This document shows positions 24,644-63,284 of a stretch of DNA of 64,000 nucleotides, piece after piece. Source of the DNA: Octopus sinensis (Eukaryota); the NCBI RefSeq assembly GCF_006345805.1, contig NC_043023.1, positions 17,112,001 to 17,176,000 on the forward strand, given 5' to 3'. The notes beneath the pieces were generated by a model. It had not been told where the DNA came from. It ran no database searches and was given only the letters and a program-made list of their open reading frames with translations. Position numbers and translations under genes: made by a program. Position 1 is the first letter of the stretch. Each line of letters opens with the position of its first letter.

Positions 24644-24786
24644 GTGAAATTTCAGTTGAGCGGAATAGTCTCTTTCACGTATATTTTCAACGGCAGAGGG
24701 ATGACTTCTACATCGTGGTTCCAAAAAGATAATCTCATTTCAGGTCCAAATGTCGCTCAGTTATATTCCTATACGTTCAATAACAA
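24644..24786 (+). CDS. Coding exon 3 of the PAN-domain gene
   Basis: tttctgttttcag acceptor; VKFQLSGIVSFTYIFNGRGMTSTSWFQKDNLISGPNVAQLYSYTFNN; AA/GTATGT donor (phase 2); paralog at 63134-63284. Confidence 0.85.
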
Positions 24787-24877
24787 GTATGTATAAATTA
24801 TCTTCTTACTCATTATTAACATCTTTAATGATTTAATGATAATAAAAATAATGATTTCTCTCATAGGTACAGAATCA

Positions 24878-25925
24878 CGTATTTTAAATAATAATAATAA
24901 TAATAATGAAATTATTGTATACAGTGCTCAGGTGCACCACAACTTGTCAGAAAGTGCATATAAAGTACATGCAGTAATGTAGAAATGTCTGGAAAGCGAA
25001 CAATGTATGAGTCAGATACATGCTTGTGTGTGTATGGAGGAGAGAAAATCAGGTGTAGTGTTGGTGAATCTCAGGAAGCATGGAGGTTTTGAAGGATGCA
25101 GTGCTCCGACAACTAACAACTGATGCCGACAGTTTGTTCCATGCTTCAGTAACTCTCAGCGTGAAAAAATGTTTCTGAAGTCATGGGAGCTGTGCTGTTT
25201 CTTACTTTGTAAATATGTCCACGGGTGTTAGATGGGTGGAGTTTGAAAAGGTGCTCAGAGTTATTGTTTGTACGATGGTTGATAATTTTATGGGTGTCTG
25301 CCAAGTCAGCTGCCAGACGTCGGAGTTCAATGTGTCCATGCTCAGAGAAGTAAGGCGTTCAGGATATGGCAAATGCCTGATGGAGGGTATTCTTTTGGTT
25401 GCACGTCGCTGAACAGCTTCCAGACGATTGAATCCTGGGCAAGATAAGGGTTCCAGACCGGTGATGCAAATTCCAGGTGAGGTCTTACCATAGCTATATA
25501 AAGCCGCAGAAGATAGCCGGAGAGCGGCTCACAAAGGATTTGGTGAGTGATGCCAAGACACCCTCAGCCTTTGGACAATTTAGCGATGTGTTTTGTCCAA
25601 CGCCAATCACTGTCGACAATAACACCAGGTCACGTTCACATGAAGACTTTTTGAGACTAGTGTTGTGGAGGGAGTAGGTGGACGCTGGGTTTCTCCTCCA
25701 AAATGCATGGTGGTACATTGTCTACAGCCAGCGTGAGTTGCCAGTCCATGATCCACTGCTGCATTGTGTCCAGGTCTGCTTGCAATAGAGATCTATAGTG
25801 TACAGGATTTGACCTCTTTATTTCGAGTACAGCTTGATGTCATCTGCATATTTCAGCACTGTGGAATTCTTTAATTTGGCATCTATGTCATTAACATATG
25901 CAACAAATAAAAGGGGGCCAAGAAC
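24878..25925 (-). mobile_element. CR1/L2-type LINE 3' fragment in intron 3, left arm only
   Basis: Minus-strand frames give MVRPHLEFAS.VW.PYL..D..RLEAVQRRATK...ERL..L; (TTA)n tail; empty site at ~63030. Confidence 0.85.
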
Positions 25926-26254
25926 AGAGGTGAAGTCGATTTTATTACTTACTTTATTGCTATTATTTTACCGACCCTAAAATAATGGAAGGCTTTGGTA
26001 GAATTTCCGATCAAAATCTTAAGGGACGAAACTATCGCAAGGTATATTGCTTGGCACTTCACCGGTTCTCACACTCACCCATTTCATTGTTGTAGTACTA
26101 GTAGCAGAGGTGGTAGTGGTCGCGGCGATGATAGTAGTAGTAGTAGTAGTAGTTGTAGTAGTAGTAGTAGTAGTAGTAGTAGTAGTCCTGTCTGCTATAG
26201 GCACAAGATCTGCAATTTGGGGTAAGGGGGGATTGTTTATTGCTTAATTGGTAC

Positions 26255-61300: not shown

Positions 61301-62442
61301 TTAATTTGTTGTTGCAAACGCTCTTGCCAAGAAGGCTTTTTGTGGGACTGTTGCCGTTTTCTAATCTTTACACCACATAGGATCGTTGAGATTTTCGCGG
61401 ATGCATAGTATAGGTGGTTGAGATCTGTGATATCAACATCATTAGCTGAAATTATATCCTTAAGTGCAAGCAGGGTTTTACCAATTATTTTCATGTTTTG
61501 GTTAGAGTTGCGGATTTTAGGGAGTGTATCACGTTTATCCATACTGGTTTCTTTAATTTTCAGCCATTCAATCATGATTTGACTTTTTAGCTCATGTAGT
61601 TCTGTCGGTCAATATTTGTGTGACTTTCTTCATCTATTTGATGTTCATCTGTCTTAGTGTTTATATTTGGTTCAGGGAGTATTTCACTTTGCCTATCACT
61701 TATACTAACTCTTTCAATCCTTACTTCGTTTTTATTAGCTCTGAGCTGGTCTATAATTATTTCCTCTGTATTATCTTCTTTAGCTGCAGCTTCGTTCATT
61801 CTATCCGTTACTGCTTGTCTAATTTGATCAACCTCTACTTCAGTCAGTAATTTTTTTTTATGTTTCTTCTGACGTTGGCAAGTTTGTTACTGTCTATGTA
61901 GGGTCTTACTTCAGGGTGTTTCTGTCTCTAGTTTATGTAGGTTTGTATAGTGTTCGATTTATCTGTGGGGAAATATATGGCATGGTAGAAGGCCGCAAGA
62001 ACTTCTTTATTATCTTCCCTAGTCCATTTTTCCTTCTTTTTCTTTTGAGTGTTTGGTGACGAGCATGGATGGCCATCTGTTGGAATATTCCAGTTGCGGG
62101 GTACGTCCAGCTCCTGTGTGTCGGGAAGATTTGATCCAGTAGCTGATTTTTCAATCAGACTTTGGTTCAATTTTCGGGTACGTGGTATTTTGTAGTCCGC
62201 TCGCCGACCATCGCGGATTGTAGGTTGTTTTGTTGACATTGAAGCATAACGAGCTTCCATTCTTATATTAGGAGATGGATCTGTCAGTTTAGGATTCTCT
62301 GCACGTAAACATTGTTCGTAGCGCAGGTTTTTAAGGCTAGCAGATCTGTATTCATCTGTATTTTTTTTGTTGATAGTTTTATCTCCGGGCATAGTTTTCC
62401 CTTTTTTTTTTACTTATGAAAGGTTCACTCTGCCTGTATTAG
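58397..62442 (-). mobile_element. R4/Dong-clade non-LTR retrotransposon (RT, CCHC, restriction-like endonuclease) inserted in (TAA)n; frameshifted
   Basis: GIFQGDSLSPLLF, HLIYMDDLKL, CRVC...ETIDHVVSKC, RPDIIL...LIDMTVP...KYKDL; (TAA)n on both flanks, the known Dong target. Confidence 0.88.
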
Positions 62443-63133
62443 TTATTATATTATTATTATTATTATTATTATTATTATTATTATTACTAGGAGGCGGCGA
62501 GCAGGCAGAATTGTTAGCACTCCGGACAAAATGCTTAGCAACAATTTGCTCGTCTTTACGTTCTGAGTTCAAATTCCTCCGAGATTAATTTTATCCTTTC
62601 GGAGGTCGATGAAATAATTAATTACCAATTAAGTACCAATTAAGCAATAAACAATCCCCCCTTACCCCAAACTGCAGGTCTTGTGCCTATAGTAGACTGG
62701 ACTACTACTACTACTACTACTACTACTACTACTACTACTACTATTTATACTACTACTACTACTACTACTACTACTACTACTACTACTACTACTACTACTA
62801 CTACTACTACTACTATCATCGCTGCCACCACTACCACCTCTGCTACTAGTACTACAACTATGAACTGGGTGAGTGTGAGAACCGGTGAAGTGCCAAGCAA
62901 TATACCTTGCGATAGTTTCGTCCCTTAAGATTTTCAGCGGAAATTCTACCAAAGCCATACCTGCCTTCCATTATTTTAGGGTCGGTAAAATAATAGCAAT
63001 AAAGTAAGTAATAAAATCGAATTCACCTTTGCCTTAAAATACGTGATTCTGTACCTATGAGAGAAATCATTATTTTTATTATCTTAAATCATTAAAGATG
63101 TTAATAATGAGTAAGAAGATAATTTATACATAC

Positions 63134-63284
63134 TTGTTATTGAACGTAAATATTGTTAAATGTGAATAAGCGATAGTTGGACCTGAAATGACTTTATTGT
63201 TTTGAACCACGATGTAGAAGTCGTCTCCGTGCCGTTGAAAATAAACGTGCGATTTAGAATTGTTCCGCTCAACTGAAATTTCAC
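63134..63284 (-). pseudogene. Paralogous exon 3 of the PAN-domain gene (1-nt deletion in an A-run as assembled)
   Basis: Intact splice sites; restored reading VKFQLSGTILNRTFIFNGTETTSTSWFKNNKVISGPTIAYSHLTIFTFNN. Confidence 0.8.

Follow-up and report, generated by a model that had tools for sequence, protein, structure and literature searches.

A hypervariable exon island between near-identical introns in a young cluster of octopus-specific, apple-domain-like genes

The window analyzed here is a 64,000-nucleotide stretch of the Octopus sinensis genome (GCA_006345805.1, CM016885.1:17112001-17176000) that carries two paralogous genes, a left gene (L) and a right gene (R, LOC118768098). A third paralog (U) lies on the unplaced contig VCDQ01005258.1, and a tandem sister pair (sinA and sinB) lies in locus L001 (O. 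sinensis CM016885.1:17229270-17291719). The fourth coding exon of these genes differed strongly among L, R and U, while the introns on either side were nearly identical. An earlier note on this DNA had described the contrast for L and R; the observation is stronger than the note had it, since it was seen in three copies, and the exon excess is real and replicated in three paralogs. We interpret the divergent part of the exon as a hypervariable island that codes for loops, in a young cluster of apple-domain-like genes that is specific to octopuses and evolves in concert, with diversity-favoring selection as its most likely cause, and we put the probability of this interpretation at about 50%.

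Both copies of the exon in the window were bordered by AG and GT splice sites, the left copy at 24644-24786 (143 nt, plus strand) and the right copy at 63284-63134 (151 nt, minus strand), as had been proposed. Between L and R, 25-27 substitutions plus indels were found in the exon, and 29 of the 50 aligned residues were identical (about 28 of 50 had been counted before). The earlier figure of about 28 nucleotide differences with in-frame 3-nt and 6-nt indels agreed with the substitutions and with both indels, but the two lengths differ by 8 nt rather than 9 because an additional 1-nt deletion in R breaks the frame. The flanks were as the note had them, with about three differences upstream and about one downstream: 3 of 100 upstream intronic bases differed, and a single 1-nt indel was found in 100 downstream. 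The divergence of the studied exon was 17.6% (L-R), 17.5% (L-U) and 21.1% (R-U), versus 4.8% (81/1701), 4.6% and 4.4%, respectively, in the upstream intron (Fisher p = 1.2e-7, 8.9e-8 and 2.4e-11), and 0%, 3% and 3% in the first 100 nt downstream. In all three pairs, the exon was the most divergent 140-nt window that was not a microsatellite. For the same pairs, divergence was 8.2%, 6.6% and 3.9% in the PAN-like exon, 7.4%, 8.1% and 8.0% in the intron after it, and 5.4%, 1.1% and 4.3% in the third coding exon. The general statement that exons evolve faster than introns therefore applies to the studied exon in L, R and U; the other exons showed no general excess, with the local exception of one block in the PAN-like exon of L.

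A four-sequence alignment showed nearly invariant introns on either side and an exon core that was different in every pair. Identity was complete over the first 22 nt and the last 14 nt of the exon and over its blocks coding IFNG, TSTSWF and IS, and the differences were confined to the stretches between them; the hypervariable core of the left copy lies at about 24666-24773. Lineage-specific changes in the exon numbered 9 in L, 14 in R and 14 in U (6-10% per site), versus 2.2-2.5% per lineage in the intron. The island of about 110 nt had thus accumulated lineage substitutions at 3-4 times the intron rate, together with in-frame indels, and indels in the exon reached 2.1 per 100 nt versus 0.6. 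The 3-nt and 6-nt indels preserved the reading frame, and L and U remained open. Compared with outgroup paralogs, the island changes were interspersed point substitutions from a family-like ancestor and included no foreign blocks.

The exception in the PAN-like exon is a hyperdivergent block specific to the left copy at 20860-20915 (plus strand), which reads TDDASSLTECSFRC in L and TKTASSRLECASLC in R, U, sinA and sinB. A hand count over 51 nt gave about 15 changes, of which three were synonymous, and the Cys residues were kept. L carried 18 lineage-specific changes in the PAN-like exon, and the block was the third-ranked window in the L-R and L-U comparisons.

An AlphaFold2 model was made of P0046, a full-length relative 55% identical to L. 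The mean predicted local distance difference test score (pLDDT) was 60, with 70-81 over residues 121-170 and 66-75 over residues 51-90. In this moderate model, the C-terminal domain was predicted to be all-beta; the conserved blocks of the exon corresponded to strands, and the variable stretches to a hairpin loop after VKFxL, a turn at NG-x-x and a loop before the last strand. The variable stretches of the exon coincided with stretches that are variable and indel-rich across the family.

Signs of gene conversion were found in the 5' half of the genes. Between 21466 and 23297, L, R, U, sinA and sinB were all 4-6.6% apart, with conflicting, spatially clustered splits: R grouped with sinA at ten sites, including 22883-22887 in the third coding exon, and with sinB at three sites (22021-22029). 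The 4-nt patch at 22883-22887, in which R and sinA differ from L, U and sinB, has the form of a conversion patch. A boundary within the intron at 23298-23331 (plus strand) separates a 5' part, where the five copies are similar, from a 3' part, where window-type and sin-type copies are about 31% apart; from 23298 the splits switch to sinA and sinB versus L, R and U, and identity between the two types drops from 93% upstream to 68% downstream. Judged from these sequence patterns, gene conversion is demonstrably active in the cluster, and concerted evolution can explain part of why the introns are nearly identical. The earlier note had named gene conversion as an explanation that would overturn its reading; conversion may indeed account for the intron identity, but not obviously for the island. 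By itself it does not account for the same 110 nt differing in three copies, and with conversion active across the cluster, some force must therefore maintain the island differences.

The copies evolve in concert, with recent duplication and gene conversion holding the introns and most exons 4-8% apart. In the mechanism that we propose, the island would code for two predicted loops plus the adjoining strand ends, and selection would favor or preserve differences in these loops, either via new substitutions or by rejecting homogenizing conversion tracts. The outcome would be paralogs with one scaffold but different surfaces, as in those toxin and immune families that show accelerated exon evolution or "segment switching". 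R would then have lost its function recently through a 1-nt frameshift and the loss of its next exon.

Diversity-favoring selection, as judged from the substitution pattern, is likely but unproven, and the earlier claim of a signature of positive selection confined to amino-acid-changing sites was not borne out. The exon pair L-R showed 4.3-4.6 synonymous differences (Sd) over 30 sites and 22.4-22.8 nonsynonymous differences (Nd) over 108 sites, a ratio of the nonsynonymous to the synonymous proportion (pN/pS) of 1.4-1.5. The note had reported no synonymous change at all; one Ile difference (ATA/ATT) was purely synonymous, and synonymous steps occurred in several multi-hit codons. Across all copy pairs, exons 1 and 2 gave a ratio of nonsynonymous to synonymous rates (dN/dS) of 0.44-1.4. 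The ratios of transitions to transversions in the exon were 15:10, 11:14 and 17:14, versus about 50:31 in the intron, and on these ratios a deaminase-type hypermutation signature was rejected.

Several results weigh against selection as the cause of the island. After frameshift correction, pN was 0.21-0.23 and pS was 0.15-0.175 in the three pairs, so that the ratio proposed as a check by the earlier note exceeded one (1.26-1.51) but reached significance in none of them (Fisher p = 0.44-0.80, n = 3 sequences). The pS of the exon was about 3.5 times the intron divergence (p = 0.014), and first, second and third codon positions were hit about equally (9/10/8, 9/11/9 and 9/14/8); neither is expected from selection on amino acids alone. 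The next exon (28356-28465) showed no excess between L and U, with a pN of 0.097 below a pS of 0.155. The homologous exon of sinA and sinB likewise showed none, differing by 5.0% versus 5.2-8.0% in the introns (pN 0.046, pS 0.105). One of the three copies, R, is a pseudogene that carries as many island changes as the others. Finally, the signal is carried by three sequences, and the mapping to loops is based on a mediocre model.

Exon-confined ectopic gene conversion from other family members, or "segment switching", would need no selection and is, although doubtful, the explanation that competes best with diversity-favoring selection. Distant paralogs would pair only at conserved exon blocks, and the tracts would then be limited to the exon, changing all codon positions and introducing in-frame indels while leaving the introns untouched. 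The even codon positions, the raised pS and the in-frame indels are as this process would produce them, and conversion was seen in the cluster, including the 4-nt patch common to R and sinA in the preceding exon. The R sequence GAGACG (Glu-Thr) was also present in the O. vulgaris paralog P0024 and in P0047, and states in the L-specific PAN-like block (TEC-S, RC) occurred in more distant paralogs. However, a 12-mer search of nine other paralog loci, an incomplete sample of the paralogs, found no donor tract of at least 12 nt for any hypervariable block, and the conserved blocks alone were shared. The differences from outgroups were scattered single substitutions rather than swapped blocks, and each of the three copies was unique in the same places.

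It is unlikely that the island is a neutral relic, that is, the remainder of old copies about 20% apart in which conversion by chance homogenized all but this stretch and the loops are unconstrained. Such a history would fit a pN about equal to pS in the island (0.15-0.23), the even codon positions, the active conversion and the wide variation of the loops in the family. It would, however, require conversion tracts to end inside this one exon, on either side, in all three of the copies; no window in the introns was comparably divergent (at most 16 per 140 outside a microsatellite), and the strand-coding blocks inside the exon were identical. A local mutational hotspot, for example error-prone repair or a sequence-specific instability of the exon in the window-type copies, is less probable still: all site classes and indels were raised by a similar factor (substitutions about 4-fold, indels as given above), as a hotspot would have it, but the conserved blocks in the exon were untouched, no transition or deaminase-type bias was seen, and sinA and sinB lacked the excess. 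An assembly artefact, with a chimeric or mis-polished right arm or unplaced contig, is highly improbable, because three independent contigs hold three different coherent exons with clean near-identical introns, two of the three exon copies keep an open frame and sequencing errors would not concentrate in 110 nt of coding sequence, even though the sequence around the 1-nt deletion is CC/AAAA, scaffold joins of 100 N occur in the assembly and U lies on an unplaced contig carrying two 99.5%-identical copies.

The right gene was a decaying copy. Its NCBI protein model is P0002, and its first three coding exons lie outside the window (10001, 22827-23157 and 25704-25795 of locus L002, which was fetched around P0002). 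In the right copy of the studied exon (63134-63284, minus strand), GGTTCCA has become GGTT-CA through a 1-nt deletion after 63204; the CC is kept in L and U, so the deletion is specific to R. The true frame of the exon then runs into a premature TAA at 63158-63156, inside the exon. The NCBI model uses a cryptic terminal exon at 63583-63654 (minus strand; an exact match to P0002 residues 147-169) instead of the broken exon. A 366-bp deletion, with its junction at 57216-57219 (minus strand) in a T-run (57219/57216), leaves L 28162-28527 without a counterpart in R and so removes the counterpart of the L exon at 28356-28465; U retains this exon. The last coding exon of R (IIPFETLVISVSLY and stop) is at 46799-46848 (minus strand). 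Barring an assembly error behind the 1-nt indel, R is an unprocessed pseudogene or decaying copy. With the frameshift and the loss of the next exon, R is therefore decaying, not gaining glycosylation sites. Of the two N-glycosylation sequons that the right copy had been said to gain, NRT is new and found in R only, but NGT belongs to the consensus of the family (FNGTGTNSTSWF) and has disappeared from L and U, which read NGR.

The left gene was intact, with six coding exons and 246 codons, all on the plus strand. The first exon (13862-13874; MNLK plus 1 nt, ATGAATCTGAAAG followed by gtaagt) occupies the site homologous to where the NCBI models P0001 and P0002 begin. The second (20709-21041), identified from its open reading frame (ORF) and splice sites and 87% identical to P0001, codes for a hydrophobic signal-like N-terminus and a Cys-rich PAN/apple-like domain. 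The third (22810-22901; TSWQKVFEMTPNSFKKSPIYLYWDNLPIEK) was located by tblastn of P0001 and P0002 and by its splice sites. The studied exon (VKFQLSGIVSFTYIFNGRGMTSTSWFQKDNLISGPNVAQLYSYTFNN), called exon 3 in the earlier note, is the fourth; its frame 0 was open, was taken from P0001, P0027 and the family alignment, and was confirmed by the family motif FIFNGTGTNSTSWFQKDK. The fifth (28356-28465; FSYPEFNITYSTDNRIQAKRLSGIDEKYDIYFKTNI) was found by tblastn of P0027 (82% identity) and its splice sites, and the last is at 35173-35222 (IKPFETLVISVSLYS and stop). Joined together, the five exons from the PAN-like exon onward gave an intact 726-nt ORF of 241 codons, to which the MNLK exon brings the total of 246. 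No protein model for L was returned by the protein searches; public records may leave L without annotation or list it as non-coding.

Two other gene structures were considered and rejected. Direct splicing of the PAN-like exon to the studied exon would have put the true reading in frame 2 and made R the intact copy and L the broken one; it was ruled out by the intervening exon in homologs and by the family motif FIFNGTGTNSTSWF, which fixes frame 0. Truncation of both genes had been suggested because the NCBI terminal exon FDKKIDEGTIDFVWDYI is absent from both arms; it was ruled out when family members showed the real downstream exons, which are present in L and partly lost in R. L also contains a cryptic terminal exon at 24264-24335 (plus strand; GLLLPTDATKLFIKTPKSRLISY and stop), which matches the C-terminus of P0002 and whose counterpart is frameshifted or stopped in sinA and sinB.

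Several further elements were located in the introns of L. The intron after the studied exon holds a 1,037-bp insertion at 24888-25924 (plus strand) that was not present in R or U at the same point. In the same intron, all four copies carry a short interspersed nuclear element (SINE)-like element (…GGAATTTGAACTCAGAAC…GCTAAGCATTTTGTCCGG…CTCGCCGCC) followed by an (AAT)n/(GAT)n microsatellite, at 26267-26416 and 62620-62471 of the window and at 31587-31743 and 52218-52374 of locus L001. The intron before the PAN-like exon contains a 207-aa ORF at 19702-20325 (plus strand), whose start is microsatellite read-through; to the eye, its C-terminal part (…WLRWTGHLIRMKDSRIPKQMLYGEL…) has the look of a retrotransposon ORF2 tail.

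Searching with the PAN-like exon retrieved two proteins of O. sinensis, LOC118768100 (P0001) and LOC118768098 (P0002). A profile-free scan of 1.8 billion representatives (clusters at 50% identity) returned a family of 44 hits at E <= 1e-3, 26 of which were at E <= 1e-10. The named members came from O. sinensis and O. bimaculoides, and one locus came from O. vulgaris; at least six family copies were sampled in O. sinensis, and the gene cluster has at least four copies within about 145 kb, while the unplaced contig carries further, near-identical ones. The family is octopus-specific. All public names found were "uncharacterized protein" or "Apple domain-containing", literature searches found no work on this gene family, and a protein search with the 48-aa exon peptide alone gave no matches. 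Sequence searches recovered no ortholog of L, R or U from either O. vulgaris or O. bimaculoides, and locus L005 of O. vulgaris proved to be only distantly paralogous.

Full-length members (for example, P0004 and P0046, 249 aa) consist of the short MNLK exon, a hydrophobic signal-like and Cys-rich PAN/apple-like exon, and four more exons that form a beta-rich C-terminal domain of about 130 aa. The gene product is small and apparently secreted, the cue for secretion being the hydrophobic N-terminal stretch in the sequence, and behind its PAN/apple-like domain it has a C-terminal domain predicted to be all-beta. PAN_1 and PAN_4 were the only recurring Pfam hits, PAN was the sole family matched in 8 of 12 members, and the Cys positions were conserved family-wide in the alignment. 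The scores were below the Pfam gathering cut-offs (21.4 bits for PAN_1, PF00024; 27 for PAN_4, PF14295) for the window proteins, with PAN_1 at 14.0-14.5 bits for L and 14.3 for P0002, and also for their relatives P0001 (16.6) and P0004 (18.6); the distant relative P0041 alone passed the PAN_1 cut-off, at 22.7 bits. The apple fold is a helix packed on a beta-sheet and held by conserved disulfides. A Foldseek search of the P0046 model against PDB gave no significant match, and its top hits were the apple domains of prekallikrein and factor XI and microneme PAN proteins, at E values of 0.04 or worse, up to 0.7. The C-terminal domain, which carries the variable exon, had no Pfam match in the 12 members scanned and no PDB match by Foldseek. 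Residues 449-503 of P0022, a 1,211-aa ZP-domain/EGF protein, are homologous to the region of the studied exon and match Pfam DUF7922 (32 bits, cut-off 25); this match in a distant multidomain relative is a weak lead, and the only one, to a named family for the C-terminal domain. The earlier proposal of an undescribed, rapidly diversifying, secreted PAN-domain family can be kept as far as the lineage restriction, the apparent secretion, the PAN/apple-like N-terminal domain and the lack of literature are concerned, but not for the positive-selection signature attached to it; the findings speak neither for nor against the role in recognition, defense or venom that the note had suggested.

Two of the related gene records deserve comment. 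The NCBI model LOC118768100 takes its PAN-like exon from sinA and its later exons from sinB, 21 kb away (locus L001 25451-31997 and 46518-52632), and so seems to fuse two tandem genes into a chimera; its final exon (FDKKIDEGTIDFVWDYI) is short and cryptic and lies upstream of the true next exon of the family. U (protein P0027) lies on a contig (loci L003 and L004) with a recorded length of exactly 60,000 bp, in which two U copies are 99.5% identical over 10 kb and could be a very recent tandem duplicate or assembly redundancy. U as a haplotig of L or R was ruled out, as its introns are 4-8% from both, the same distance as between L and R.

The two genes of the window lie in duplication units delimited by self-BLAST and by BLAST against locus L002, of which 27040-37457 equals window 64000-53583 (100% over 10,418 nt) and which adds 27 kb past the right end of the window. 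The left unit (13720-38787, plus strand) holds the complete gene L, and its homology to the right unit begins about 140 bp upstream of the first coding exon of L; its right side is cut by an assembly gap. The right unit (44523-64000, minus strand) contains gene R and extends past the window to about 81,190. The arms are at least 25 kb long, 82-94% identical and opposite in orientation in the assembly. The gap of 100 N (38788-38887) between the two tail-to-tail gene units is intergenic, 3.6 kb downstream of the last exon of L (35222) and 7.9 kb from the last exon of R (46799), and no exon, intron or reading frame of L or R crosses it. Its flanks were not collinear in any comparator: in locus L001, 35764-35969 corresponds to window 38579-38787, the left gap edge, and then continues into the sequence of window 44522-43550 on the other strand, not into 38888, and the right edge of the gap is a dispersed repeat. 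The left unit therefore breaks off where its contig ends, and the inversion of the two halves relative to each other hangs on the scaffold join. The earlier note's "inverted copy" is thus real as a paralog copy, its inversion depending on that join; the comparison of the L and R exons is independent of both the gap and the join.

Other repeats were found in the window. The dispersed repeat of about 200-430 bp is abundant both in the window and in all of the related loci; its copies in the window include those at 14759-15183, 21211-21444, 29748-30117, 38888-39470 (the right gap edge) and 55650-55893. A direct repeat of about 1.3 kb (5001-6291 and 9779-11079; 93.4% identity, 4.8 kb apart) lies upstream of the gene cluster, and both of its copies carry the same weak ORF match (SCSRIQYAILSGN...). 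A gene model for a 103-residue histone-fold protein (CENP-T_C and TAF Pfam hits) is drawn across loci L001, L002 and L008 (CM016885.1 17165583-17412738, about 250 kb), overlapping the whole cluster, and has either a huge intron or is an annotation artefact.

Cephalopod genomes are rich in lineage-specific families of unknown function, and localized hypervariable surfaces offer a way to choose recognition, immune or secretory candidates among them. If diversifying selection is indeed at work, one exon with two loops in otherwise near-identical paralogs would be a compact, tractable case for the interplay of conversion and selection in an invertebrate gene cluster. The biochemical role is presumably extracellular binding, by comparison with other proteins of the PAN/apple type. 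More tentatively, the island may encode the variable surface used for recognition in a repertoire of secreted binding proteins with apple domains that is specific to octopuses, and selection would keep it diverse in the face of ongoing conversion; this would place it beside MHC-, KIR- or conotoxin-style diversification as a cephalopod equivalent, possibly serving immunity, chemotactile sensing or prey/pathogen interaction.

The window proteins resemble PAN/apple binding proteins (plasma prekallikrein, factor XI and apicomplexan microneme PAN proteins) in having a Cys-rich N-terminal domain of about 60 residues after a signal-like sequence, in the recurring PAN_1 and PAN_4 hits of the family and in the top Foldseek hits of the relative P0046. 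They differ in scoring below the Pfam cut-off, in the weak Foldseek E values (0.04 or worse) and in that the variable exon sits in the C-terminal beta domain, which has no Pfam or PDB match. In MHC peptide-binding exons, KIR and conotoxin mature-peptide exons, conversion homogenizes the flanks while a short ligand-contact segment stays diverse. The octopus cluster likewise has clustered paralogs, including decaying copies, with flanks homogenized around a diverse segment, but its signal comes from three copies and its synonymous sites are raised too.

The closest likeness is to the accelerated exon evolution, or ASSET, of snake toxin genes, in which introns are highly similar, short exon segments are radically different, scaffold residues are kept and the changed segments lie on loops or the surface (PMC2474615, PMC2711939); its mechanism is regarded by its authors as unresolved (PMC2474615, PMC2711939). 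In the octopus genes, introns were 95-100% identical versus about 80% in the exon island, and the strand blocks were identical. Introns were more conserved than the exon segment, as in ASSET, in all three pairs of this exon (p <= 1e-7 in round figures), but not in sinA and sinB. The octopus island differs from ASSET in that its changes look like many point substitutions, not unrelated replacement segments; only one exon plus one block in the PAN-like exon of L is affected, and the excess of nonsynonymous over synonymous change (omega > 1) is not significant. The octopus family is not a known toxin family, no observation points to a venom gland, and the likeness is one of pattern, not of toxin function. 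From an uncharacterized family, the exon described here adds a further case to a pattern already known as accelerated exon evolution or ASSET.

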